Below are positions 1,117-51,642 of a stretch of DNA of 64,000 bases, in pieces; positions within the stretch are counted from its first letter, which is position 1, and the number at the start of each line of letters is the position of its first letter. The DNA lies in IMG/VR virus record IMGVR_UViG_3300025319_000005, positions 62,001 through 126,000 of that record, one strand, 5' to 3'. The translations under genes and the position numbers were made by a program. Under the pieces are notes generated by a model. It had not been told where the DNA came from. It made no database searches and saw nothing but the letters and a program-made list of their open reading frames with translations.

Positions 1117-1175
1117 GGCGTTATGTTTTGTTTACAATGTACTATACAAGAAATAATTGAATGGTGTTACAAATA

Positions 1176-1373
1176 TTATTCGACTTGTAAAATCCTATCA
1201 AGAATCATTCTCTCAACATTCCCATTCTTTATTTTGTTCGCCCACATACCGGCAATTGCTATAAACTCATCCAATGTATCGGCTTCATCAATTTCTTCTG
1301 TTATTTGTTCTAAATCATCTCCCTCTAAGGTGATGGATTTTTTGTATTCTGATTTCAATTTGTCTAATGTCAT
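1176..1373 (-). CDS. small acidic hypothetical protein
   Basis: Array orientation. Confidence 0.7.
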   Translation of the reverse strand: MTLDKLKSEYKKSITLEGDDLEQITEEIDEADTLDEFIAIAGMWANKIKNGNVERMILDRILQVE

Positions 1374-1378
1374 AGCGT

Positions 1379-1555
1379 TTAGTTTTTTACGTTAATTTCA
1401 GTCATTAATATAAAGTCTTCAAGTTCAGCTCCGTCAAGTGATTTACCACCGTCAGCATAAAATGAAGCAAGCATCATTTCACTTAACTCTTTGAGTTTTG
1501 TTGCAATTTCAACGGCTGTTCCACTTCCTGTTATTTTAATTTCTAATTCTTCCAT
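1379..1555 (-). CDS. hypothetical protein (58 aa, not in ORF track)
   Basis: MEELEIKITGSG...; motif upstream at 1576. Confidence 0.7.
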   Translation of the reverse strand: MEELEIKITGSGTAVEIATKLKELSEMMLASFYADGGKSLDGAELEDFILMTEINVKN

Positions 1556-1629
1556 GATATTTTGTTTTTGTTTACAATGTACTATACAAGAAATAATTGA
1601 ATGGTGTTACAGATACGTGAATATATTTG

Positions 1630-2442
1630 TTACGCTTCCACCGCAATTTTACTGTTTTCTATTCGGGCGTTTTTCATTTCCTCCCTGTTTTGTGGGAAAA
1701 TATCCCCAAGTTCCTCAACAGTTAAAGTTTTAAATCCTTTAAAACGTTCAAGAAATTTTTTATTGATTGAAATGTTTTGTTCAAATTCAATTGGTTTTTT
1801 ATCTTCTTTTGCACTCTTCAATTCATCTTTTGAACAATCGTTTTTGCTTTCAGGATAGTATGCTTTCAAATAAGTAGAAGCATCAACAGGTGTCATACGT
1901 TTTAGTTTTTCAACTGTGCTATCTCCACCGATATTAACAAAGCAGTATTTTGGATTTTTAAGTGTAAAATCCATAATTAACACGCCATCATTATTATCTC
2001 CCTTATCAAAAGAACTACTATATATCAATTCGTTCTCGTCTATATGTTCTTCATTTAAAAGACTTAAATGGTCAATGCCAATACGACAATATTTACCCAA
2101 CTCAAAATCAAACATATTTTGCATATAATTTTTAAACCATTCGATTACATCATTTGGATTTTTTATGCTATCACATTTTTTGTGTAGTAAATTATTATAA
2201 CCATAGGTATCTTCGTGAAAATCTTTAACGGCGAATAAGACTTGAGAAGCCACTAAAGCAAAAGAGCGACCGTATAACCATTGGTGATGAAAAGCAACTA
2301 TAATGGTATTTTCTTCACCATACATTTGTTTCCATTTTTTGTATATTTCCTGGTTTGCTACATAACCGGTAATATCCTCTCTCCATTCCTTTTTGGAATC
2401 AATTTTTATTCTTTTTGCCCATGTTTTGCCAATATTTGGCAT
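1630..2442 (-). CDS. hypothetical protein
   Basis: 270-aa ORF, motif upstream. Confidence 0.75.
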   Translation of the reverse strand: MPNIGKTWAKRIKIDSKKEWREDITGYVANQEIYKKWKQMYGEENTIIVAFHHQWLYGRSFALVASQVLFAVKDFHEDTYGYNNLLHKKCDSIKNPNDVIEWFKNYMQNMFDFELGKYCRIGIDHLSLLNEEHIDENELIYSSSFDKGDNNDGVLIMDFTLKNPKYCFVNIGGDSTVEKLKRMTPVDASTYLKAYYPESKNDCSKDELKSAKEDKKPIEFEQNISINKKFLERFKGFKTLTVEELGDIFPQNREEMKNARIENSKIAVEA

Positions 2443-2592
2443 CTGGATATAAATTTGGCTGCGTTGTCCGATAATTTTAACGACCTTTTGGGTTCGCCCT
2501 CGTTTTAATTAATACTTATTTATAATGTACTATACAAGAAATAATTTGATTGTGTTACAACTTCGTTGGGTTACACCACAAATAATATGTTT

Positions 2593-2892
2593 TTATTTCA
2601 CCAGTTCTCCCTCGCCGTGTTTTCCGGTTAATATTTCTGTGTGGATTTTACTGCAGAATGCAAGAATATCTCCCTGTGGATAATCTCCGCTACTATAAGG
2701 GCAAGTTATTCTAAGAAACAATTTTGACTCCAGCCGGCTGATGAATTTATGTATTGTTCCGGATTTTACAATATTGATTTGATTATCTAAGAAAAACTTA
2801 AAGTGTGTTGAATACTCAACATCTTCGTTTATCCTGTACCACTGTTTTTCTTTTGATTTTTCTCCCATGATTTTTATTTTTAAATATGACAA
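2593..2892 (-). CDS. hypothetical protein
   Basis: Array orientation; start uncertain. Confidence 0.6.
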   Translation of the reverse strand: MSYLKIKIMGEKSKEKQWYRINEDVEYSTHFKFFLDNQINIVKSGTIHKFISRLESKLFLRITCPYSSGDYPQGDILAFCSKIHTEILTGKHGEGELVK

Positions 2893-3641
2893 TCTAAAAT
2901 TGTTATTTGAAAATTCCTATCTTCTGTTTTGTTTAAGTTTAAAAAATAGTTATACTTTTCGATAAGAAATTTCTCATTAATGTTTTCATCTCCCTCATAA
3001 TATGTTTCTTCATCTCCGTTTTCATCTTCAATGATAATATTACAAATCATTCTTTTTACAGCATCTTCTTTCGACATATTTTCATTCCAACTCTTTTGTA
3101 TTGCCTTGAATTTGTTTATTATATCTTGTGCTGAAATATCTTCAGAAATTAGCATTTCACTTTGTCCATCTAATTCCAAATGCGAACACGCTTCTATTAA
3201 TTCCATTTCGCTTATTTTAACGTATTCTTGTACGTTATCTCGATATTTTTCTGCTACCTTTTCATCTTTTAAGTTAAGAGCTTTTTTCAAAAGAGCCTTT
3301 AATTCTTCTTCGCTTTTACAGGTTGGCAATATATTTTTCCAACGACCACCTACCTCACACCAATCATACATCGAATCGCTGTTATAGCTATTTCCATATT
3401 CTCCATATTTTAAATCGAGATGTGAGTATTCTCCCTCCATAAACTCGGCTAATGTTGGATATGTTTTTTCTATTTCAGGAACTTCTTTTATTGTGTTCTT
3501 ATATAGCTTTTTTGCTTGTTTTGCAGTATATTCAACTTCAAATGTTATTTCTGCTCCATCGTCTTCGGTTGCATCGCAATTATGTTTTGCCATTATGGAA
3601 GATTCTTCGCTTTCGTGGATTAATAAAACTGAGAAGTGCAT
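2880..3641 (-). CDS. phage hypothetical protein (MHFSVL...YDWCEVGGRW...ILDCHI)
   Basis: DW-x-x-GGRW and C-terminal DCH pattern typical of a recurrent phage family. Confidence 0.75.
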   Translation of the reverse strand: MHFSVLLIHESEESSIMAKHNCDATEDDGAEITFEVEYTAKQAKKLYKNTIKEVPEIEKTYPTLAEFMEGEYSHLDLKYGEYGNSYNSDSMYDWCEVGGRWKNILPTCKSEEELKALLKKALNLKDEKVAEKYRDNVQEYVKISEMELIEACSHLELDGQSEMLISEDISAQDIINKFKAIQKSWNENMSKEDAVKRMICNIIIEDENGDEETYYEGDENINEKFLIEKYNYFLNLNKTEDRNFQITILDCHI

Positions 3642-3705
3642 AGGATATAATTTTAGTTTGTGTTATAATGTACTATACCAAGAAAAATTGAGCTACGTTA
3701 CAAAA

Positions 3706-4038
3706 TCAATCATCATTTTCAACTTCTTCTTCACCTGTTTCCCATTCTTTTTCTGTGATGATATATCCAAAACGATTAACATAATGAAATCCTGCAGAAA
3801 TAATAAGTTTGCCATCTACATCTAAAATAGTCCAAACACGTTTTTTGGTTTTTTCATCTTGTGCCATTTTAAGGATATATGCTTCTTCCTCTCTATAAGT
3901 TTCATACATTGTTCCACCAAAAGAACAAACATCTTCATCTTTAATTAAAATGTTGGTTTCAGCTCTAATAATATGATTTATTTGAGGCTTATACTCTTTG
4001 TAAAAAACTTCGTCTTTTATTTTCTTTATCTTTTTCAT
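3706..4038 (-). CDS. hypothetical protein
   Basis: Start reassigned downstream of motif at 4058. Confidence 0.7.
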   Translation of the reverse strand: MKKIKKIKDEVFYKEYKPQINHIIRAETNILIKDEDVCSFGGTMYETYREEEAYILKMAQDEKTKKRVWTILDVDGKLIISAGFHYVNRFGYIITEKEWETGEEEVENDD

Positions 4039-4103
4039 GATTTTGTAATTTTTTATTATTGCACTATACAAAAAATTAAATTCCTGTGTTACAAAAAGAA
4101 ACT

Positions 4104-4439
4104 TCACACTCTATCTTGCAGATTTTGGATTAGTTCTTCTAAAATAAACTGCTCCTTATATGGCATTTCAGAATCAACGTTCTTAGCTTCTTTTTTGATT
4201 TCTTTACAAACTTGAGATGCAATTTTTGCTACAACTTCCTTAAATTCGGGATACCTTTCAAGACCAATTAAGGGTTTGACTTTATAGTAGTTATCATTAA
4301 CATATTTAAGGTCATCTTCATAACTGATAGAAACAATCGCTTTCATGTAGGGACTATATGCTAAATTGCCGACTTTGATTTTTGAATAATCATCTTTTTC
4401 AATCTTGTATTTGACGTTATTATAAGTTGCTGTTTCCAT
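4104..4439 (-). CDS. hypothetical protein
   Basis: Motif upstream. Confidence 0.75.
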   Translation of the reverse strand: METATYNNVKYKIEKDDYSKIKVGNLAYSPYMKAIVSISYEDDLKYVNDNYYKVKPLIGLERYPEFKEVVAKIASQVCKEIKKEAKNVDSEMPYKEQFILEELIQNLQDRV

Positions 4440-4494
4440 TTTGTTTTTGGTTTATAATGTACTATACCAATTTTAATTTAATCGCGTTACACTT

Positions 4495-4689
4495 TTAAAT
4501 ATGTTTCTCCGCATTTTCTCTATTCTTGAAATAAACAGTATCCATTGTTCCTGCAAAAGGGTTTTGTTCTTTTATAGTAAATGCTTTATCTCCAGCTTCA
4601 ATTGAAATTCCTGTGTCTTTAAATAAAAACAAGCCTGCTTCATCTTTCCCGATGGTTACTTCCTTAACTTTTTCTCCTGTGATTTTCAT
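4495..4689 (-). CDS. hypothetical protein
   Basis: Motif upstream. Confidence 0.65.
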   Translation of the reverse strand: MKITGEKVKEVTIGKDEAGLFLFKDTGISIEAGDKAFTIKEQNPFAGTMDTVYFKNRENAEKHI

Positions 4690-4857
4690 ACTGTTTAATT
4701 AAATTATGTTTATATTTTTTCATGTTATATTGGTTGTTGGTTTGTGATGTGATATTTTGTTTGTTATAATGTACTATACAAATTTTAATTCTTTTGTGTT
4801 ACAAAGAAGGCGGATGTGGCGTCACAGGCTGGTTTCAGGCGATTTTTTGATTTATTA

Positions 4858-4939
4858 GATATACGTAAAATCCAATTCAATTTTTGTCACAAACTTAATT
4901 CTTTTTGTGACAGAATTTCAGATTTATGTTTCGTATATC
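4858..4939. repeat. Nested palindromic element copy 1
   Basis: GATATACG..TGTCAC-N16-GTGACA..CGTATATC. Confidence 0.95.
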
Positions 4940-5071
4940 CAAATAAAAATTAAATCCTACTTTAGGAGCCCTGGGAAATTCTGAAGCTCCGGTGCTTCAG
5001 AATCAGGATTTTACGCAAACAAAAAGCCCAGGAATTTTCCCGGGCTTCGTGTGAAATGTAAAAATATATCT

Positions 5072-6590: not shown

Positions 6591-7208
6591 TCAGTTTTTT
6601 TCTATCTCTTTCAACATTTCAACTTCTTCTGTTTCAAGTTGAGCGTATTCGTTTAATTTATTTGTGTGTTCAGTTGCAAGTTTTTCGATTACCTTTTCTT
6701 TATCAATTTTCAATTTTTTTATACAAGTGAGTACTTCTATTTGAACTTCACGTTTGTTTTTGGAAATATTTACTTTATCACCATGAACAGCACCCCAAAC
6801 ATTTTTACCAACTTCTTCTTGAATTGATATTTCACAACATACTATTCCCAATATGTTTAAGTCAAACAAATTAATTTTATATACCCCTATTTTAGAATTA
6901 TGCTTTTCAAAGTAAGCAAATCTAGGTGTAATCTTTGTAATTACGTCCGACCATACTTTATGAGAATAAACACTGGAGAACCAAAACACATCACCAACTT
7001 TAACATCAGATTTTATTCGTGTATCAACAAAATAGGATTTGTCAGCTTGAATGTAAATTCCCATTAGTTTGGGATGTTTAACTGTATAAACATTTTCAAA
7101 AGTGTGAATTTCTACTTCTACCTCCGTTCCTTTCTCAATTGGACAGACAGCGTGCGACCATTTAGGACATTTTAGGCTCTTTGCTAATATTAGTTTCTTC
7201 GTTTCCAT
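6591..7208 (-). CDS. hypothetical protein
   Basis: Motif upstream. Confidence 0.75.
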   Translation of the reverse strand: METKKLILAKSLKCPKWSHAVCPIEKGTEVEVEIHTFENVYTVKHPKLMGIYIQADKSYFVDTRIKSDVKVGDVFWFSSVYSHKVWSDVITKITPRFAYFEKHNSKIGVYKINLFDLNILGIVCCEISIQEEVGKNVWGAVHGDKVNISKNKREVQIEVLTCIKKLKIDKEKVIEKLATEHTNKLNEYAQLETEEVEMLKEIEKN

Positions 7209-7509
7209 AGAAAATTCTGTTTTTATTGGTTTGTAATGTACTATACCAAAAATTAAATTGCCGTGTTACACTTTTAAATTGATATTCTCAGCTATTAAAA
7301 ATAGGCTTTCGTCTATTAAAAATCAGTTTTTAACTATTTTATTAAATTGTTAATAATATCCAGCCTACTTTTACAGTGAATGTCAAATATGATACAGATC
7401 ACCAAAATTAGTGATAAACATCACTTAGTTTTAAGAAACAGATAAATAACTCTATCGTTTAATTTTATATAAACTGAACCGTCAGAAACGGCAACTTAAA
7501 AAACAGATT

Positions 7510-7827
7510 ATGGAAACAAATTATGTCAACGTTGAAAATTTGGATTTAAAAAACTTAACATCAAAAGAGCTTTTTCTATACACTTTAAATAAAATTGGCA
7601 GACCTTCACTAGCAAGGGATATGGCTGAATATTTGGAAAGAAATAAATTAATTTCAATGAAAAAAGAGGAAATATTAATCAGATTATATACTGGTGCGAC
7701 ACAATTAAACAAATCAAAAGTAGTTAGTAGGATGCCCTATGATGGCAGAATGTATATGTATGCTATCATAAAACAACAACAATTTGTTAATTTGACAGCT
7801 CAGAATAAATTTAAAATGGTTGCATAA
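7510..7827 (+). CDS. putative winged-helix DNA-binding protein, paralog 1
   Basis: Shares DL-x-x-LT-x-x-E-x-FL...IG-x-P...RDM...Y with next two ORFs; basic; fold is inference. Confidence 0.6.
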   Translation: METNYVNVENLDLKNLTSKELFLYTLNKIGRPSLARDMAEYLERNKLISMKKEEILIRLYTGATQLNKSKVVSRMPYDGRMYMYAIIKQQQFVNLTAQNKFKMVA

Positions 7828-7975
7828 CAAATAAATGTGTGAATTATATAACACAAAAATAAAATTGTGTAATAGCTACATGTTCATAAATTGCAACCTT
7901 TGTTGCGTTAAAAAGTATAAACAATAAAGATTTTAACTGTACCGACAGAATCGGCAATTTAAAAACAAAAACAAA

Positions 7976-8377
7976 ATGAATACAATTAGCAAAAAAAAGG
8001 TTAAGGTTAAAGTTCCAACTCCTTCGGCAAAAGCCGTAAAGTCAAAAACTAAAGAAGAAAAAACAACGAAAAAAGCGATAGAAGAAAAAACAAAAGATGT
8101 TGATTTGAATAATTTAACAGCAGATGAAATCTTTTTACAGACCCTAAAAGAGATAGGCGCACCTTCTCGCGTTAGAGATATGGTTGCTTTACTTAAAAAG
8201 AATAAACGAGTTTCAATAGCAAAGAAAAAATTGTTGATAAAATTTTATGCCAGTGCATCACACTTAAATCGAGATGGTGTAGTAAAAAGAACCCCGGTAA
8301 ATGGAAGTATGTATGCTTACAGTCTTTTGGGCTGGAAGAAAAATAAAACCAAAGCTAAACTATCTGTGGCTGCATAA
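7976..8377 (+). CDS. putative winged-helix DNA-binding protein, paralog 2, Lys-rich N-tail
   Basis: As above. Confidence 0.6.
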   Translation: MNTISKKKVKVKVPTPSAKAVKSKTKEEKTTKKAIEEKTKDVDLNNLTADEIFLQTLKEIGAPSRVRDMVALLKKNKRVSIAKKKLLIKFYASASHLNRDGVVKRTPVNGSMYAYSLLGWKKNKTKAKLSVAA

Positions 8378-10291: not shown

Positions 10292-10372
10292 GATATACGA
10301 TTAATCAAAGTCAATTTATGTCACAAAGATAAATAATTTGTGACAGAAATACAGTTTTATATTTCATATATC
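10292..10372. repeat. Nested palindromic element copy 2
   Basis: Same architecture, CATATATC variant. Confidence 0.9.
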
Positions 10373-11023: not shown

Positions 11024-11045
11024 CGTTTTATGTTTTGAGTTTTAG

Positions 11046-11119
11046 TGGAAGAAATTGGATTTGAACCAATGGCACAAACGTTTTCGGCGTTTTGCTCTAC
11101 CAGACTGAGCTACCCTTCC
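11046..11119 (-). tRNA. tRNA-Phe(GAA), non-canonical C33
   Basis: GGAAGGG TA GCTC AGTCTGGTA GAGC A AAACG CCGAAAA CGTTT GTGCC ATTGG TTCAAAT CCAAT TTCTTCC A; starts just after a promoter motif. Confidence 0.85.
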
Positions 11120-11156
11120 AGTTATAATGTACTATACAAAAAGAATTATTGCTACG

Positions 11157-11411
11157 TTACAAAAGTGCGATTTTTATGCTTGTTTGTAGGTCTTTAAGGA
11201 ATTTTGTTTCATCTTCCATTTCAGCGCCACCAAATTCAATATTACGTTGAATGGCTCTTTCTGTGAATTTGCCCATTTGGAACGCTTCTAATGGAGTTAA
11301 ATCTTTTGGTGATGTTTCTGCTTTAGTACAGACTTTTTGCCAAGTTTGTGTTTGAAGTGTATTTAATTCACCGCTGAAGGTAAATAATGGTCTTATGATT
11401 TCAAATAGCAT
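11157..11411 (-). CDS. hypothetical protein
   Basis: Motif upstream; stop in TGTAAC. Confidence 0.7.
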   Translation of the reverse strand: MLFEIIRPLFTFSGELNTLQTQTWQKVCTKAETSPKDLTPLEAFQMGKFTERAIQRNIEFGGAEMEDETKFLKDLQTSIKIALL

Positions 11412-13230: not shown

Positions 13231-13362
13231 AACGTTTGTTTTTGGTTGTAATGTACTATACGAATTTAAAACATATCGCGTTACAAAAACATAAAATAAC
13301 AGGCGGATGTTTCTGGAGAAGCCCGTCGCCGGCGAGTTCTGGAGCTATTTTTGATTTTAAAA

Positions 13363-13444
13363 GATATACGTAAAATCCAACTCAATTTTTGTCACAAACT
13401 TAATTCTTTTCGTGACACAATTTCAGATTTATATTTCGTATATC
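13363..13444. repeat. Nested palindromic element copy 3
   Basis: Same architecture. Confidence 0.95.
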
Positions 13445-13534
13445 CAAATCAAAGAAAATTCTACTCCAGGAGCCTCCAGGGATTCTGAAGCACCGGAGGC
13501 TTCATATATTTATCTTCAGGATTTTACAAAAAAC

Positions 13535-13565
13535 AAAAGCCCCAACATTTCTGCCGGGGCTTTTC
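13535..13565 (-). terminator. Conserved intrinsic terminator family ending each array block
   Basis: AAAGCCCCGGCAGAAATGTTGGGGCTTTTGTTTT on minus strand; related copies near 5022, 10543, 16060, 18360, 21505, 23370, 25207, 25960, 27405, 29420. Confidence 0.85.
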
Positions 13566-15839: not shown

Positions 15840-15921
15840 GATATACGTAAAATCCAATTAAATTCCTGTCACGAAAAGAATTTAATTAGTGACAGGATTT
15901 CGGATTTATATTTCGTATATC
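15840..15921. repeat. Nested palindromic element copy 4
   Basis: Same architecture; central spacer in reverse orientation. Confidence 0.95.
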
Positions 15922-15960: not shown

Positions 15961-16050
15961 GGGATTTTTCGGGATTTTTCGGGATTTGTCAGGATTCGTC
16001 GGGATTTTTCGGGATTCGTCGGGATTTTACGGGATTCATCAGGATTTTAC
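15961..16050. repeat. Tandem 10-bp repeat x9 (consensus GGGATTTTTC)
   Basis: gggatttttc gggatttttc gggatttgtc aggattcgtc gggatttttc gggattcgtc gggattttac gggattcatc aggattttac. Confidence 0.95.
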
Positions 16051-16287
16051 CAAAAACAAAAAAGCCACACATTTCTGCATGGCTCTTTAAATAAAATTTG
16101 CTCAACTTATAACTACGCTTGATTCCCCTTAATTGTTGTGACTCGTTCGGGTATTGTATCTGGTTTCAATGCGTTTATATTTATTTGTGTATCTGTTGCT
16201 TGGATAAATTCTTTTTTAAGGTCAGCCCAAAATCCAATTCTTTCAATTTCTAACATAATATGTTTTTTTAAATAAATATGATTGATT

Positions 16288-18185: not shown

Positions 18186-18267
18186 GATATACGTAAAATC
18201 CAATTCAATTTGTGTCACGAATTTAATTCTTTTCGTGACATAATCTCATTTTTATATTTCGTATATC
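18186..18267. repeat. Nested palindromic element copy 5
   Basis: Same architecture. Confidence 0.95.
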
Positions 18268-18632
18268 AAAATCAAAGTAAAATTCCACTGCGGAGCCTCC
18301 AGGAAATCTAAAGTTCCGGTGCTTCAGAACTTTGGGCATCAGGATTTTACCACAAAACAAAAACCCCAACATTTCTGCCGGGGCTTTTTTATTAATCTTT
18401 TATCTAATATATAAGTAATCATTATTATAAATTACCTCTTGGGGGCATCTCTTGTCCGATTCATCTCGTCTGAGTTTAAGGGTTAATACTAATTAACGCG
18501 AATAATGTGTTTAGCTACCAATTCAGCTACAATTACGCTGTTTATTTTTTGTATTGCTTGGTCTATTGTAAGTCCTAAAAGCAACCATTGTTTTAAGTCC
18601 ATGTGATTTAATATTAAAGTTAACGTTTGAGT

Positions 18633-21336: not shown

Positions 21337-21418
21337 GATATACGTAAAATCCAATTCAATTTCTGTCACGAATTAATTTATTTTTGTGACAGGATTTCAC
21401 TTTTATATTTCGTATATC
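21337..21418. repeat. Nested palindromic element copy 6
   Basis: Same architecture. Confidence 0.95.
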
Positions 21419-21603
21419 CTTATCCGGTAAAATCCTCTAGCTGGCCACCGCCTGGGGAATTTTTTTCAAGCTCTTACTTTGGGCATCAGGATTTTACACA
21501 AAACAAAAAGCCCCAACATTTCTGTTGAGGCCTTTGTCAATAAGTTCACTCCGTATTACTCCGCAGTGCCTATTCGAGGAAAATGGTGCGCCATATCCCT
21601 ATA

Positions 21604-23173: not shown

Positions 23174-23255
23174 GATATACGTTTAATCAAAGCCAATTTG
23201 TGTCACGAAAAGAATTTAATTAGTGACAGGATTTCGGGTTTAAATTTCGTATATC
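23174..23255. repeat. Nested palindromic element copy 7
   Basis: Same architecture; alternative left arm, reversed central spacer. Confidence 0.95.
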
Positions 23256-23424
23256 TAAATTAAAAGAAAAATCCTGTTCTGGAGCCTCCTGGCCGGATTT
23301 CCTTCAGCTTCAGTTTCTTGCGGTGAATGGGTTAGTTTAACTCCGCAAAAGTGCGTCGAACAGAAAACAAAAAACCCCCGCATTTCTGCAAAGGGCTTTC
23401 TGAACCAACCAATAAATTAAAAAG

Positions 23425-23497
23425 TGGAAAGGGTAGGAATTGAACCCACGACACGAGTGCTTTCGACACCCTGCTCTACCAACTGAGCTACCTCACC
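23425..23497 (-). tRNA. tRNA-Phe(GAA), non-canonical C33
   Basis: GGTGAGG TA GCTC AGTTGGTA GAGC A GGGTG TCGAAAG CACTC GTGTC GTGGG TTCAATT CCTAC CCTTTCC A. Confidence 0.85.
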
Positions 23498-25011: not shown

Positions 25012-25093
25012 GATATACGTAAAATCCAACTCAATTTGTGTCACGAATTAAATTATTTTCGTGACAGGATTTCGCTTTTATATTTCGTATATC
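25012..25093. repeat. Nested palindromic element copy 8
   Basis: Same architecture. Confidence 0.95.
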
Positions 25094-25257
25094 CTTATCT
25101 GGTAAAAATCCACGAGCTGGACGCCTGGCCAGGAATTTCCTTCAGCTCCTCCGGGGTAAACTATATTTTGGCACCAGTTTCAATCTGCTGTCGAATTATA
25201 GAAAACAAAAAACCCCTGCATTTCTGCAAGGGCTTCTCGTACCAACCAACCAATAAT

Positions 25258-25757: not shown

Positions 25758-25839
25758 AATATACACTTAATCAAACTCAATTTGTGTCACAAAATAAATT
25801 CTTTTCGTGACAAACTATCACTTTTAGTTTGCGTATATC
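25758..25839. repeat. Nested palindromic element copy 9
   Basis: Same architecture, AATATACA variant. Confidence 0.9.
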
Positions 25840-26009
25840 TCCCTAAGGTAAAATACACCACCGGCCAGCCTGCTGAGCCCAGGAATTTTTCAGGAATAGG
25901 CATCAGGATTTCATTTTGGCTTTAAGTGGGTCAAAAACATGAGTTATGGCCAAAAACAAAAAACCCCTGCATTTCTGCAAGGGCTTTCTGAACCGAACCA
26001 ACCAATGTA

Positions 26010-27248: not shown

Positions 27249-27331
27249 GATATACGATTAATCAAAGTCAATTTGTGTCACAAATTTAAATTCTTTTTGT
27301 GACAGGAAATCAATTGGATTTTACGTATATC
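27249..27331. repeat. Nested palindromic element copy 10
   Basis: Right arm is reverse complement of the usual left arm. Confidence 0.95.
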
Positions 27332-27554
27332 TTTTCAAAGTAAAATCCACCGCCGGCCAGCCGCTGAGCCCAGGGATTTTTCCTCCGGGGGAGAGAATCC
27401 CAAAAACAAAAACCCTCACATTTCTGCGAGGGCTTTCCAAACCAACCAATTGGTATAGGGCAATACATTACTGCAAGACTACAAACCCCTATCTTTGAGT
27501 GAAAACATCTACACGTAGCTATGCAAATTCATGTTTTCATACTATCTTAAATAT

Positions 27555-29269: not shown

Positions 29270-29351
29270 GATATACGCTTAATCAATACCAATTTGTGTC
29301 ACTAATTAAATTATTTTCGTGACAGGATTTTAGGTTTAAATTTCGTATATT
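29270..29351. repeat. Nested palindromic element copy 11
   Basis: Same architecture. Confidence 0.9.
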
Positions 29352-30063: not shown

Positions 30064-30181
30064 GTTTTCTAAGTTTAGTTGGTTTCTATATTGTACTATA
30101 CGAAAAAAAATATATCCATGTTACAAAACTGAAAAAGTTTTTATCGACCGAAAAATCCTGGAAATCTGTGCTTTTCTTTAT

Positions 30182-30264
30182 AATATACGTAAAATCCAAC
30201 TCATTTCCTGTCACTAATTTTAATTATTTTCGTGACAGAATATTAGATTTATGTTTCGTATATC
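30182..30264. repeat. Nested palindromic element copy 12 (at divergence point)
   Basis: Same architecture, between divergent promoters. Confidence 0.9.
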
Positions 30265-30492: not shown

Positions 30493-30528
30493 TGTAACGC
30501 AGTAGTTTATCATTTCGTATAGTACATT
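30493..30528 (+). promoter_or_regulatory. Plus-strand copy of the TGTAAC-N17-CGTATAG motif
   Basis: tgtaac gcagtagtttatcattt cgtatagtacatt upstream of ORF 30546; further + copies at 30916-30951 and 31323-31358. Confidence 0.85.
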
Positions 30529-30872: not shown

Positions 30873-30951
30873 TCAACATACGAAAGTTCATAACTTTAAT
30901 GAAATTTTATAAATCTGTAACATAGTTCTTTTTAAATTTGTATAGCACAAT

Positions 30952-31314: not shown

Positions 31315-31576
31315 CTGTATTTTGTAACACCGGAATTTTATATTTTGTATAGTATATTAGAAACAAAAACTTAAAGCCATGATAATTTTATACTACTACT
31401 TTAATCCAAATCAAATAGAATTTCTTAACCTCAAAAACCTAAACACCATGAAACAACAACTCGCAGTAATCGCAAACAATCTTACCAAAATGGAACGTTA
31501 CGAACAAATGGAACGCATCGCGCAGAATCTACTTGATATGGAAATCGAGTAGAATAGTTTTAAACATTGTTAGAGG

Positions 31577-31680: not shown

Positions 31681-31764
31681 GATATACGAAAGATAAAACT
31701 AAAATCCTGTCACTAATTTTAATTATATTTCGTGACAGGAAATGAATTGGATTTTACGTATATC
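31681..31764. repeat. Nested palindromic element copy 13 (arms inverted)
   Basis: Arms reverse-complemented relative to the other copies. Confidence 0.9.
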
Positions 31765-32318
31765 TATAAGGTGAGAAAAATCGGAAAAGTGGCTCCGGAT
31801 TTTTCATACCCGGTGGCGTTAGACTTAGGATTTTACATCCAAAGAAATTCATCAATATCTCCACCCTTAATCAACGTCTTATTTAAGTAGGCAATCCACA
31901 AGTTCCTTAATTAAGGTCTTAATCGGTATATAACGCCTTAATTGACTATTTAAGGGCTTATTTAGCCCGTATCGATATTTAGCTCTAAAAACCCCTATTC
32001 TGGGCGTGGAAAGGGAGGCTCAAAAATTATGGAGCCAACTTTTAAAAATGGATTTATCAAACCATCCGAATTAGCACCGGAGTAAAATCCTACAATCCTG
32101 CTTCCATATATATAATACCTGTTGCTCGATTATATGCAAGAACATATAATAATGCCTAAAATACACCATTTTTAACTTTTTATATGCATTGGCATATACA
32201 CATTAAATTTTCGAACTGGCAATTTCCAAAAAAATAACCAATTTCGCCCTTTCAAAAAATTTCCAGCCAAAAAATTTTTTCAAAATATTAAGACCTATTT
32301 ATATCAAAACTTATTTCC

Positions 32319-48690: not shown

Positions 48691-49216
48691 ACCAAAAAAC
48701 TATCCTTACATCATCCAAATTTCCAAGTTCTGACAATTCTTCAATATGTTTACAAAAAGTACCATCCGGACCACCAATAATGTCATAATAAGTTTTGTCT
48801 TCCCAATCTTCATCATACTCTCGTGGAAATGATATTTTTTCGAATATAACATTCCTTGAATTTGTAGAAAATTCCTGTTCTGGTGTTCTTAAATCTTGAT
48901 TAAAATCAAATTCAACCAATTCTCTAAGCGTTACAAAAGAAATAGTATGACCATCACCTTCCCATCCTATCCAGTTGCTTTTAACTGCAATAGAAACATC
49001 AATCGGCAATTTATAAGAAGGCTCTTTTATTGGTTTTACGTTACTTCTAACACCAGCTAAAAAACCAAACATACTATAAGAGCGCCAATCAAAAGGTGAA
49101 CTGGATTTTTCCGTATCAAAACTATATGATGGAGTAAAATGTTTACCGGTAAATAATTCCCATTTACATTTACCGTTTTTTCTTGTTTCAACGTGAATAT
49201 GAATATCAGCTCCCAT
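48680..49216 (-). CDS. phage hypothetical protein (MGADIH...RIVFWFDN)
   Basis: Recurrent phage-family termini; internal RNVIFEK. Confidence 0.8.
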   Translation of the reverse strand: MGADIHIHVETRKNGKCKWELFTGKHFTPSYSFDTEKSSSPFDWRSYSMFGFLAGVRSNVKPIKEPSYKLPIDVSIAVKSNWIGWEGDGHTISFVTLRELVEFDFNQDLRTPEQEFSTNSRNVIFEKISFPREYDEDWEDKTYYDIIGGPDGTFCKHIEELSELGNLDDVRIVFWFDN

Positions 49217-49902
49217 TATTTTAAAATATTTACTTTTTCAATTAAAACATTTCTTGAATATGTATTTGCTTTTAAAATATAATAGTTTAACATATCTTCA
49301 TATTTATCATGCTTTCTATCTAAATATACACTCGCATCTTTATATAACCAATTTAAAATACTCATAATTTGTTGATTACCTTTTTTATAAACTCTATATA
49401 TCATTTTCATTTTTCCATATCCAAGGACAATATTTGTTTCTTTCAAAAATATATCATAAATTTTTTTCATAAGCTGTTCAGTTCCAACAATACTAAATTG
49501 ATAACGTCTATAATTTTTATCCATCGTATAACAAATAGAACCATCTCCATCAAACAAACCTCTAATAAAATGCCTATATAAATGCTCTTTTATAATAGGA
49601 AATTTAGCTATTTTACTTTTTCTTGGAACGACTCCATAGTTGTTTAAATTGTTTATTATTTCTTTTTTTGTACAACTGAAATAATATATAGGCCCAAATC
49701 CATGGTCTGTAATTGAAATTGGTTTTTCATCTATATAAATTAATTTAGATAACTTTTCTAAGTGTCCCTTATCTTTAATATTAACTCTTAAATTCTTATT
49801 TCCAATATTACAACCATCAGCAAGAATAAATCCTAACCAATATGCTTCTTCTTCTGTATTTATATTTTTAAATACATTTTTGTTATATTCATATTTTTTC
49901 AT
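49216..49902 (-). CDS. LAGLIDADG homing endonuclease
   Basis: AYWLGFILADG and HFIRGLFDGDG; YLDRK; extra C-terminal RNVLIEK. Confidence 0.9.
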   Translation of the reverse strand: MKKYEYNKNVFKNINTEEEAYWLGFILADGCNIGNKNLRVNIKDKGHLEKLSKLIYIDEKPISITDHGFGPIYYFSCTKKEIINNLNNYGVVPRKSKIAKFPIIKEHLYRHFIRGLFDGDGSICYTMDKNYRRYQFSIVGTEQLMKKIYDIFLKETNIVLGYGKMKMIYRVYKKGNQQIMSILNWLYKDASVYLDRKHDKYEDMLNYYILKANTYSRNVLIEKVNILK

Positions 49903-50085
49903 GTTAATAAATATGGAAAAAATAATTAGTTACAACCCATCACAACCCACAATAACAATTAAACATAATTTGTGTTTTTTTTTCTTGCAAATGTAAAAAA
50001 AAAATTTGATAATATTTATTAAAAGCTAATAAAAATAGCAAAGATATTTAAGATACGACTTAGGAGTTCCAAAAAACATAGAGAC

Positions 50086-51642
50086 TTATAGAAAGAGCAT
50101 AGTTTTCACTTTGCTTTTTTCTGTTTTATTCTGTGCGTTTTGCTGAAACAAATAATTGTTCTTATTTGCCCTACGAACACTCTTCTTCGTAAGTTGGAGG
50201 CGTTTACACATTTCTTTCCAAGAACTTATGTTCTGTAATTCGTTATAATCCATCTGTGTGATATTACTCACGTTGGTTATAACTCCTTCATGGAAAGAAG
50301 GCATAAACTTTCCTCCTTTAATATATTTTATCATCCCTCTCCTACAAATCTCAATGCTTGCTGCGATTGGATCAAATGTATTATAATTTATATTTCCGAT
50401 AAAACTCGAATAACATGGGTTTATCTCAATCTTCTTTATTCCATAAAATGAACACCACTTATCTGAAAGTTGAGCAATTAAATTTCGACACCAGATATTG
50501 TTTATCTGTCTATTTGAATTCTTATTTCCATTGTCTTTACCAGAAATGTTGGTTAGTTCCTCAATAACAAAATTACACGTATGATAATGTTCTAGTTCTG
50601 AAAAAAGATTTTTTATTGCAATTGACAATTCATGTTTTCTTTTGTCTGAAGACACTTCTTTTTCTGAGAGTTTTACGAAATCAATAAATCCTTTTTTTAT
50701 TATCTTAAAATCACCTTCCAATGAACTACTTAATTCATTTTTGTCACAAATTGAATAACCGATTCCTTTTGGATTTAAATCTATTCCACAATATCTATTT
50801 TGCATTTTTATACCAAACATGCGTTGTTCGTGATCTCTGTGTGCTTGTGAAATAAGTTGTTTTCGTTCGGTTTTATCTGTAACGTGTTTTATGTCTTTAT
50901 AGAGTTGTTTTTCGTTAAACCATTTTCCACTAATCCTACTTTCTTCATATGTGATACAAATGTATGTTGAAGTCAATTTAATTGTAACAGGTATTTCTTT
51001 TTGCTGACACAACAAAGCAATAATTTTTAATATTCCTTTTTGTTTTTGTGTTGCATAAAACGAAATGTTAACTTTTCTTTTTGAATTTTCATATTTAAAA
51101 ATAACATTTCCATTTCCGAGTTCTTTTAAATTAAAAAAACGGTTACCTTTGCTGGCTGAATCTCCATAAAAAGTAATTGGCAACAATCTATTTTCTTTAA
51201 ATTTCTGTTTGTTTTTTAAATATAATTCTGGATTAGAAATCTTTTGTTTTGTTATAACTTGCAATAATTTTCTCCCGCCAAAAACAACATTCAAATTTAA
51301 AGACTTGTTTAAAGAAGAAATTTTTCTTTGCAATTTTTTCTTTAAATTTGGTTTTGTTTCGTTTTTAAGTTTTTCATGCAATTTAATAATATTCTTGTTA
51401 ATCCTTTCTTTGTTGGATTTCTCTCGTTCTTTAAAAGCGATTACTTCTTTTATAAGATAACTATATGCTTTATTTGAGTGAATGTGTTTAGAAATAATTT
51501 CATCGATAAAATTCTTATCCTCAATTAACTCAATATTGCGATACATTTTTCTGAAGGCAATCGAATATTGTTTTTGTAAAGAAATGATAAACTCTTTGTC
51601 TTCTTGATTGATGTTTGTTATTTTGAGTTTAAGGGTTAACAT
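50086..51642 (-). CDS. tnpB: TnpB-like RNA-guided RuvC nuclease
   Basis: VVFGGR, GNRFF, GIDLNP, VIEEL, INPCYSSFIG, DPIAASIEICRRG; D/E/D intact; no C4 Zn finger. Confidence 0.85.
   Translation of the reverse strand: MLTLKLKITNINQEDKEFIISLQKQYSIAFRKMYRNIELIEDKNFIDEIISKHIHSNKAYSYLIKEVIAFKEREKSNKERINKNIIKLHEKLKNETKPNLKKKLQRKISSLNKSLNLNVVFGGRKLLQVITKQKISNPELYLKNKQKFKENRLLPITFYGDSASKGNRFFNLKELGNGNVIFKYENSKRKVNISFYATQKQKGILKIIALLCQQKEIPVTIKLTSTYICITYEESRISGKWFNEKQLYKDIKHVTDKTERKQLISQAHRDHEQRMFGIKMQNRYCGIDLNPKGIGYSICDKNELSSSLEGDFKIIKKGFIDFVKLSEKEVSSDKRKHELSIAIKNLFSELEHYHTCNFVIEELTNISGKDNGNKNSNRQINNIWCRNLIAQLSDKWCSFYGIKKIEINPCYSSFIGNINYNTFDPIAASIEICRRGMIKYIKGGKFMPSFHEGVITNVSNITQMDYNELQNISSWKEMCKRLQLTKKSVRRANKNNYLFQQNAQNKTEKSKVKTMLFL

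Follow-up and report, generated by a model that had tools for sequence, protein, structure and literature searches.

Whether the two kinds of repeated element in a stretch of environmental virus DNA, a bipartite motif in front of small genes and a set of palindromes between blocks of those genes, are read by one and the same factor is the question that this locus raises. The stretch (the window hereafter, 64,000 nucleotides, nt) covers positions 62,001-126,000 of one virus contig of 212,632 base pairs (bp), IMG/VR record IMGVR_UViG_3300025319_000005, labelled G000 here. An initial annotation read the array motif, TGTAAC-N17-(C/T/G)GTATAG, as a promoter of the type used by extracytoplasmic function (ECF) sigma factors, and took each palindrome half to be a mis-spaced copy of it. 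Our analysis supports the former idea and leads us away from the latter. The explanation we favour, and to which we give about an even chance, is that a phage-encoded ECF sigma factor reads the array motif (class 1) and that the palindromes are back-to-back pairs of a second promoter-like class of element (class 2) at the boundaries of gene blocks. On this view the window represents the region of early-type genes in a phage of 213 kb, which most likely redirects host RNA polymerase via its own ECF-type sigma factor.

The array motif and a phage sigma factor

The array motif was borne out by an explicit search. Written as TGTAAC-N18-GTATAG and allowed at most one mismatch, it matches the window 50 times against 0.2 expected, with 47 copies on the minus strand and three on the plus strand. 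The whole contig holds 68 exact copies, all within 5.8-93.4 kb, and a scan of spacer lengths from 14 to 25 returned 68 copies with N18, one with N17 and none with any other length. The 17 nt from TGTAAC to nGTA are invariant and lie within the ECF range of 14-17 bp (PMC5758882). TGTAAC itself, which carries the AAC of an ECF -35 element, is identical in 68 of 68 copies. Beyond GTATAG, the start codon of the next open reading frame (ORF) mostly follows after 20-39 nt, with a mode at 25-26. One copy stands immediately before a tRNA gene, which shows that the motif acts in transcription and not in translation. The predicted class-1 promoters of the window are as follows.

443-30125, minus strand: class-1 array, 47 copies, consensus tTGTAAC(a/g)c-N-aaTT-N-T(t/c/g)GTATAGTACATTATAA, preceding almost every small gene
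1142-1171, 1582-1611, 2530-2559, 3673-3702, 4064-4093, 4462-4491 and 4774-4803, minus strand: the seven class-1 promoters within 1136-4939
11132-11161, minus strand: class-1 promoter of tRNA-Phe, 12 nt upstream of the tRNA 5' end (tRNA 11045-11119, minus strand)
30493-30522, 30916-30945 and 31323-31352, plus strand: three class-1 promoters past the point where gene direction flips

Upstream of the window, at 5.8-61.2 kb of the contig, 19 class-1 promoters stand apart as a subclass, in which the -35 region is extended (TGTAACACCTCTCA) and the genes are more widely spaced; these may be a separately tuned subset. Bacterial and archaeal genomes gave only single chance matches to the class-1 pattern, and the motif therefore offers no lead to a host regulon or prophage.

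A search of the whole contig for sigma factors, which the initial annotation had proposed as a check, found exactly one gene of the sigma-70 family. It is of the ECF type and lies outside the window.

Contig 6960-8066, minus strand: ECF-type sigma factor, 368 amino acids (aa), found by profile search of the whole contig

Its assignment to the ECF group (group 4) follows from the presence of sigma regions 2 and 4 only, with scores above the family threshold: 36.8 bits for Sigma70_r2 (PF04542, cut-off 24), 46.8 bits for Sigma70_r4_2 (PF08281, cut-off 25.7) and 88.9 bits for TIGR02937 (sigma70-ECF, cut-off 42.9) over residues 184-354. SigW is the top-scoring NCBIfam model, but neither it nor any other named equivalog, SigX among them, attains its own cut-off, which leaves the protein an unassigned ECF sigma factor. 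The sigma gene comes second in its operon, 34 nt after orf168, and a class-1 promoter stands 29 nt before orf168. To judge from its sequence, this is the autoregulatory layout typical of ECF sigma factors.

The motif and the sigma factor also travel together. Sigma orthologues of 35-60% identity co-occur with the unchanged motif in the relatives G001, L175, L179, L180, L183 and L184, and TGTAAC is invariant in all six. One of these, G001, is a complete phage of 518,809 bp, whose sigma orthologue is 40% identical over its full length and which carries 48 copies of TGTAAC-N17-CGTATAG; a class-1 promoter lies about 1.1 kb upstream of its sigma gene on the same strand. In L175, a 4.3-kb contig, the sigma factor is 60% identical, three class-1 copies are present, and gene order as well as the promoter and operon layout are the same as here. 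L179, L180, L183 and L184 each have both the orthologue and the motif. Together with the operon layout, this conservation supports the ECF-like reading of the array promoter. Class 1 (TGTAAC-N17-nGTATAG-TAC) would then be the promoter of the phage sigma factor acting on host core polymerase, with TGTAAC as an ECF-type -35 element, (C/T/G)GTATA as the -10 element and an ECF-typical distance between them. Such a promoter would drive nearly all of the small genes, a tRNA gene and, by positive feedback, the operon of the sigma factor itself.

Several other observations concern the transcription machinery. The sigma factor has a 170-aa N-terminal extension that is conserved in G000, G001, L175 and L179 and absent from the 220-aa orthologues of L182 and L183; searches with it found no family and no convincing fold neighbour. 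A role for the extension as an additional reader of the class-2 box was considered and dropped, because the sigma factors of L182 and L183 lack it, yet L183 has class-2 elements. Weak region-4 matches at 184.1 kb and 139.4 kb of the genome, considered as a second sigma factor, are HNH endonucleases with helix-turn-helix repeats. Besides its ECF sigma factor, G001 has a pair of neighbouring genes for RpoD-like sigma factors, each of about 290 aa (G001:305,500-307,300; L165:510-2331, minus strand); G000 has none of this kind. No T7-like or multisubunit RNA polymerase (PF00940, PF00562) was found in the contig, which is about 81% complete; divergent ones would escape, and the control for the PF00940 search cannot give a signal in bacteria.

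Paired elements at block boundaries

The palindromes are equally real. Matched as GTGAC-N20-CGTATATC with at most two mismatches, their halves occur 26 times in the window against 0.5 expected, and these 26 matches make up 13 outward-facing pairs. Two further pairs lie just upstream of the window, giving 15 pairs and 30 halves genome-wide. By the spacer they contain, the halves are of three conserved kinds, which label the pairs below: type A (..TTGGATTTTA-CGTATATC), type A' (..TTTGATTAAn-CG..) and type B (..TTTATATTT-CG..).

4858-4939: class-2 pair, A at 4858-4890 (minus strand) toward the genes and B at 4907-4939 (plus strand) toward the terminator at 5023-5048
10292-10372: class-2 pair (A' / B)
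13363-13444: class-2 pair (A / B), with a terminator at 13535-13564 (minus strand) and the next class-1 promoter at 13256-13285
15840-15921: class-2 pair (A / B), followed by the tandem array at 15961-16048
18186-18267: class-2 pair (A / B)
21337-21418: class-2 pair (A / B)
23174-23255: class-2 pair (A' / B)
25012-25093: class-2 pair (A / B)
25758-25839: class-2 pair (degenerate A' / B variant)
27249-27331: class-2 pair (A' / A)
29270-29351: class-2 pair (A' / B)
30182-30264: class-2 pair where class-1 promoters diverge (30096-30125, minus strand; 30493-30522, plus strand)
31681-31764: last class-2 pair, flipped (B on the minus strand, A on the plus strand) in step with gene direction

As the initial annotation stated, the boxes of the halves resemble those of class 1 and stand 3 bp further apart. 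Its further remark that the palindrome centre resembles promoter spacers holds in part: both are AT-rich with AATTCTTTT-like runs, but the relative positions of these runs differ. What finds no support as stated is that the halves are mis-spaced copies. In a scan of spacer lengths from 14 to 25 with at most one mismatch, N20 accounts for 29 of the 30 halves and no other length for any, a spacing as invariant as that of the promoters and one that is kept in two distant relatives. Fixed bases also separate the classes in every lineage, class 1 reading GTATAG-TAC and class 2 C-GTATAT-C, with the C before GTATA obligatory in class 2 only. CGTATATC is exact in 23 window halves, and its C, which gives the CGT of an ECF -10 element, is kept in 29 of the 30 halves genome-wide. 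The upstream box departs from the ECF pattern, since GTGAC stands here and TTGGC in G001, and L183 alone, with TTAAC, has the AAC. Likewise, the invariant 20 nt from GTGAC to CGT fall outside the ECF range of 14-17 bp.

The halves behave as independent, directional units rather than as arms of one site. The gap between them varies from 15 to 18 nt while the internal N20 is rigid. The palindrome arms are 70-75% complementary, and the 20-nt spacers of the two halves agree at only 7-12 of 20 positions; a single dyad operator or a cruciform would have arms that are complementary throughout and stand at a fixed distance. Because the spacers are not complementary, hairpin or cruciform formation is not what selection acts on. 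In most pairs A or A' faces the genes and B points backward, and the orientation reverses where gene direction does.

Relatives break up the pairs. Elements with the same N20 occur in G001 (box TTGGCAG) and in L183 (box TTTAACAA), and types A and A' recur in G001. When aligned on the -10-like box, the upstream box reads TRRCA in three lineages (TGACA in G000, TGGCA in G001, TAACA in L183), and class 1 reads TAACA. G001 has three pairs, 16, 25 and 40 nt apart, and four singles that all face the upstream terminator; two of its singles stand back-to-back, at 38 nt, with a class-1 promoter. L183 has one pair about 33 nt apart, one tandem copy and one isolated copy. One element of G001 is followed, after 23 nt, by the ATG of a 146-aa ORF, upstream of which no class-1 promoter is present. 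A counterpart of this ORF was sought in G000 and gave only a marginal match (E 0.005) without a class-2 element upstream. A scan of IMG/VR with the class-2 pattern gave single chance matches only.

The pairs are embedded in a recurrent boundary arrangement. Strong minus-strand terminators precede eleven of the 13 window pairs, at 71-174 bp, and for 12 pairs the next class-1 promoter follows after 54-112 bp, a distance that shows no helical phasing. The terminators that precede most pairs belong to one family, with a stem around a CAGAAATG loop and compensatory stem changes between copies, and the same type is found in G001. The flanks of the pairs are GC-rich, at 43-48% against 26% inside the pairs and 31% in the genome. 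GCCGGC occurs 21 times against 1.7 expected, one third of the copies being in pair flanks, and CGCCGGC is often placed +28 to +32 nt from the -10-like box in the flanks of both G000 and G001.

5023-5048, minus strand: strong intrinsic terminator closing the preceding block, 84 bp before the pair at 4858-4939
13535-13564, 16059-16088, 18359-18388, 21506-21535, 23375-23394, 25205-25240, 25957-25990 and 27408-27437, minus strand: other terminators of the same family
About 15-80 bp on either side of pairs (for example 4805-4845, 4960-5005 and 13295-13345): GC-rich islands, rich in CCAG/CTGG and GCCGGC
4865-4873, 5006-5014, 13370-13378 and 13519-13527: examples of the 9-mer described below
15961-16048: tandem array, 8.8 copies of GGGATTTTTC with a 10-bp period, degenerate copies of the 9-mer complement, between a class-2 half and a terminator
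Contig 48,990-50,130 (outside the window): cluster of 13 copies of the 9-mer in both orientations, in 1.1 kb of non-coding DNA adjoining a DNA-methylase-like gene

The 9-mer, GTAAAATCC(T), occurs 86 times in the contig against 2.9 expected, mostly at 40-100 kb. Every A-type half contains it (GGATTTTAC-GTATATC); it also stands in the flanks on either side of the pairs and directly after terminators, and it is kept in G001, L179, L180 and L183. Judged by its sequence and arrangement, it looks like an iteron or an operator for a DNA-binding protein, possibly at an origin, and it may be the operator of the class-2 promoters. Rfam has nothing in or beside the palindromes and only two tRNA matches in the window. 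Small-RNA genes adjoining the halves were considered and rejected, as neither an Rfam match nor a consensus fold was found.

What might read the palindromes

The rigid N20, the variable pairing, the ORF-proximal case in G001 and the class-specific bases argue that the palindrome halves are a second promoter-like class and not a degenerate copy of the first. Each palindrome would be two divergent, directional, bipartite elements composed of a TRRCA box, exactly 20 nt and CGTATATC, from which transcription may start in both directions. Class 2 would keep the GTATA core of the -10 element and still form a separate specificity class. From the gene-facing half, transcription could enter the downstream block by a second route. 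The opposite half may fire into the GC-rich stretch and the terminator of the preceding block, yielding a short RNA, opposing read-through, or both. Because of the additional 3 bp and the fixed discriminating bases, class 2 would need either another sigma-like factor or the phage sigma factor together with a co-factor that alters how far apart its two DNA-reading domains reach; the position of a 20-bp spacer outside the ECF range leads to the same expectation. The -10-reading domain of the same sigma factor may nevertheless contact both classes.

Several points weigh against this explanation. With one sigma factor only, class 2 may not fire at all across a spacer longer than the known ECF 14-17 bp, and no second sigma factor or activator for class 2 was identified, including in the complete G001 with its one ECF and two RpoD-like sigma factors. 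Only one class-2 element directly precedes an ORF, and it belongs to G001. The 30 halves are not independent, as they share three conserved spacer types and whole boundary modules (terminator and GC-rich flanks) look duplicated. For class 1, the first base of the -10 element is C in just 22 of 68 copies (T in 36, G in 10), which is weaker than the canonical ECF CGT; the motif always reads CGTATAG in G001 (41 copies), L179 (three), L180 (one) and L183 (seven). No host-type promoter was found for the sigma gene, and the first expression of the sigma operon is unexplained if it relies on its own product. RNAalifold returned no consensus RNA structure for the stretches downstream of the halves in either flank family, and beside gene-facing halves the flanks are no more stably folded than shuffled sequence; beside terminator-facing halves folding is good, chiefly because the terminator is included. 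Finally, near-identical DNA was found among public runs solely in metagenomes of soil, sediment and groundwater, and all 20 runs that contain it are DNA libraries, none of them RNA.

The initial annotation had instead proposed that one factor may recognise both kinds of site, the palindromes serving as sink, loading site or operator. Spelled out, one sigma holoenzyme would bind both, and the halves, over-spaced by 3 bp, could not open and would be non-productive sinks, polymerase reservoirs, loading sites or blocks to read-through. The boxes are truly alike (TGTAAC beside (T/C)GTGAC, nGTATAG beside CGTATATC), the L183 box TAACA is identical to the class-1 core, G000 and the complete G001 each have a single ECF sigma factor, the 20-bp spacer lies outside the productive ECF range (PMC5758882), and a position just past terminators would suit a roadblock. 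A decoy, however, needs no exact geometry, and N20 is invariant within and across three lineages, in which the class-specific bases (G-TAC against T-C after GTATA, with C before it obligatory in class 2 only) are conserved as well. One element of G001 also stands as far from an ORF start as a promoter would, and no other promoter precedes that ORF; the variable, unphased distance of 54-112 bp to the neighbouring class-1 promoter is a poor fit to a loading site or an operator. Since the halves are also independent directional units, we find this proposal unsupported as it was written and consider it rather unlikely. The palindromes could also be operators or architectural sites for phage DNA-binding proteins that work independently of polymerase, one binding the boxes and another the 9-mer GTAAAATCC, and that organise or silence the early region; the likeness to promoters would then be coincidental or stem from competition. 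This would account for the abundance of the 9-mer and its placement in A-type halves, in flanks, by terminators, in the array of 10-bp period and in the 13-copy cluster, for the conservation of the half spacers as A, A' and B (the first two also in G001), and for GC-rich CGCCGGC islands at a near-fixed distance from the box in two phages. On the other hand, single and tandem halves in relatives mean that no dimer on a palindrome is required, the two halves keep no constant distance, the boxes resemble a sigma-type promoter too closely in their order, orientation and -10 core for this to be chance, and the ORF-proximal element of G001 again fits a promoter better. We think this alternative unlikely as a replacement for the second promoter-like class, with which it is compatible in so far as the 9-mer may be the class-2 operator.

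It may also be asked whether the modules are mainly substrates for recombination, cassettes of promoter, terminator and palindrome that shuffle small genes in the manner of promoter early stem-loop (PeSL) cassettes or of miniature inverted-repeat transposable elements (MITEs), with no regulatory role for the palindrome. Boundary modules are repeated whole with shared terminator and flank families, the region is made of small unrelated ORFs, and a tyrosine recombinase and HNH endonucleases are encoded on the contig. The ends of the 82-bp element, however, show no target-site duplications, and boxes and N20 are kept where the sigma factor is only 35-40% identical while the flanks diverge, which points to selection on the boxes. 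We regard this explanation as very improbable, and a pure cassette role as the least likely sole function of all; any use in recombination would be a side effect and would not stand in place of regulation. Other candidates were set aside on specific grounds: sigma-54 promoters, as TTGC is missing 5 nt after TGGCA; dyads of the CRP/FNR type, whose order and spacing are wrong; integron attC or dif-like sites, in which the box spacing is wrong; MITEs, for want of the target-site duplication; and host Bacteroidota -33/-7 promoters within the halves, again for their spacing.

It is tempting to extend the second promoter-like class into a fuller model, which we offer as a speculation with a low chance of being right in all its parts. 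The boundary module, composed of terminator, 9-mer, GC-rich island, class-2 pair, GC-rich island and class-1 promoter, might be a phage device of a kind not described before, one that insulates and re-times gene blocks. Class 2 might be read by a host stress-type ECF sigma factor switched on by infection, or by the phage sigma factor with its geometry altered by a co-factor; the terminator-facing half might be a convergent promoter that enforces termination, and a protein binding GTAAAATCC might gate the module. If true, the reading of class 2 by a host ECF sigma factor or with a co-factor would solve the initial switch-on of the self-dependent sigma operon.

Genomic setting and known systems

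The contig is graded as linear in IMG/VR and has a G+C content of about 31%. Its small-gene region is an array of small, unrelated ORFs, and eight of ten large ORFs have no match in PHROG. A megablast of window positions 32-44 kb against GenBank phages found no close relative, and a tblastn search of the same phages with the sigma factor found merely distant ECF sigma factors of crAss-like and other phages, at less than 31% identity. Genome-wide, host-type TTTG...TAnnTTTG promoters show no more than a modest excess, with 27 copies for 8.7 expected. The part of the class-1 region that lies upstream of the window has genes for three or more DNA methyltransferases, a helicase, a GNAT protein, an M28 peptidase and the tyrosine recombinase. 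The contig strongly avoids GATC, with 66 copies where about 550 would be expected, and lacks GGATCC altogether (about 15 expected); CCGG is over-represented (331 against 97 expected). Further features of the window are as follows.

11045-11119 and 23424-23497, minus strand: two tRNA-Phe(GAA) genes within the small-gene array
31765-32318: 555 nt free of ORFs after the last class-2 pair, bordering the sigma-promoter region and the rest of the genome
41628-42749, minus strand: intact 373-aa ORF matching the thiol-activated (cholesterol-dependent) cytolysin family (PF01289, E 3e-35), an unexpected pore-former-like gene for a phage of environmental bacteria

Sigma factors encoded by phages are a classic theme, and those with promoter sets of their own include the sigma factors of phiEco32 and Salmonella phage 7-11, gp28 and gp33/34 of SPO1 and gp55 of T4. 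As in these phages, a phage sigma factor here would retarget host core polymerase to a phage motif repeated across the genome. The phiEco32 motif tAATGTAtA likewise contains GTATA (PMC4331800). The motifs of phiEco32 and 7-11 differ in being single, extended -10-like motifs of middle and late genes, whereas the motif here is bipartite with a canonical ECF -35 element and covers a small-gene region that looks early, along with the sigma gene. For class 2, a functional analogy is offered by the middle promoters of T4, at which MotA and AsiA appropriate the host sigma factor: the -10 element is kept, the -35 element is replaced by another, shifted box, and a co-factor is needed for the altered geometry of the sigma factor. 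The kept -10 core, different upstream box and altered geometry of class 2 are similar, although no homologue of MotA or AsiA was identified here and class 2 takes the form of back-to-back pairs at block boundaries. The PeSL cassettes of T4-type phages frame small early genes with a conserved promoter and a terminator hairpin, and their repeats are possible recombination points. The array described here resembles them in its small genes with repeated promoter and terminator, and departs from them in a promoter that would be read by a phage sigma factor instead of host sigma-70, and in the additional divergent class-2 pair, the GC-rich islands and the 9-mer.

The closest parallel for class 1 is found in Bacillus subtilis. 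Sigma-W recognises a -35 TGAAAC and a -10 CGTA and sigma-X a -10 CGAC, ECF spacers measure 14-17 bp, and closely related ECF sigma factors are distinguished by one or two -10 positions (PMC5758882). Like the promoters of sigma-W (TGAAAC-N16-CGTA) and sigma-X (tGtAAC-N17-CGAC), class 1 has a -35 element ending in AAC and a -10 element starting (C)GTA, with 17 nt between AAC and CGT. The sigma gene stands behind its own promoter, its top model is SigW, and class 1 and class 2 differ by few -10 bases, as in B. subtilis. Unlike there, the sigma factor is borne by a phage, would serve as many as 68 promoters, in all of which the -10 element is followed by another conserved block (GTACATTATAA), often meets T or G in place of the C of CGT, and carries the N-terminal extension, and no anti-sigma factor was identified.

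Many phages of the Bacteroidota type and many huge environmental ones carry an annotated ECF-type sigma factor; the regulons of these factors have, to our knowledge, hardly been characterised. New here are a phage ECF-type regulon of such a size that is readable from sequence, and a strictly spaced second class of element in divergent pairs at terminators. Sixty-eight near-perfect sites, a matching sigma factor and their conservation across phages of 213-519 kb amount to a ready-made orthogonal pair of sigma factor and promoter. Moreover, class 1 and class 2 together make it possible to test, in a concrete case, how promoter classes within one phage programme can be kept apart by the geometry of the spacer and by one or two bases of the -10 element. 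Even if the mechanism proves ordinary, the transcription plan of a huge phage that is uncultured has been cleanly annotated.

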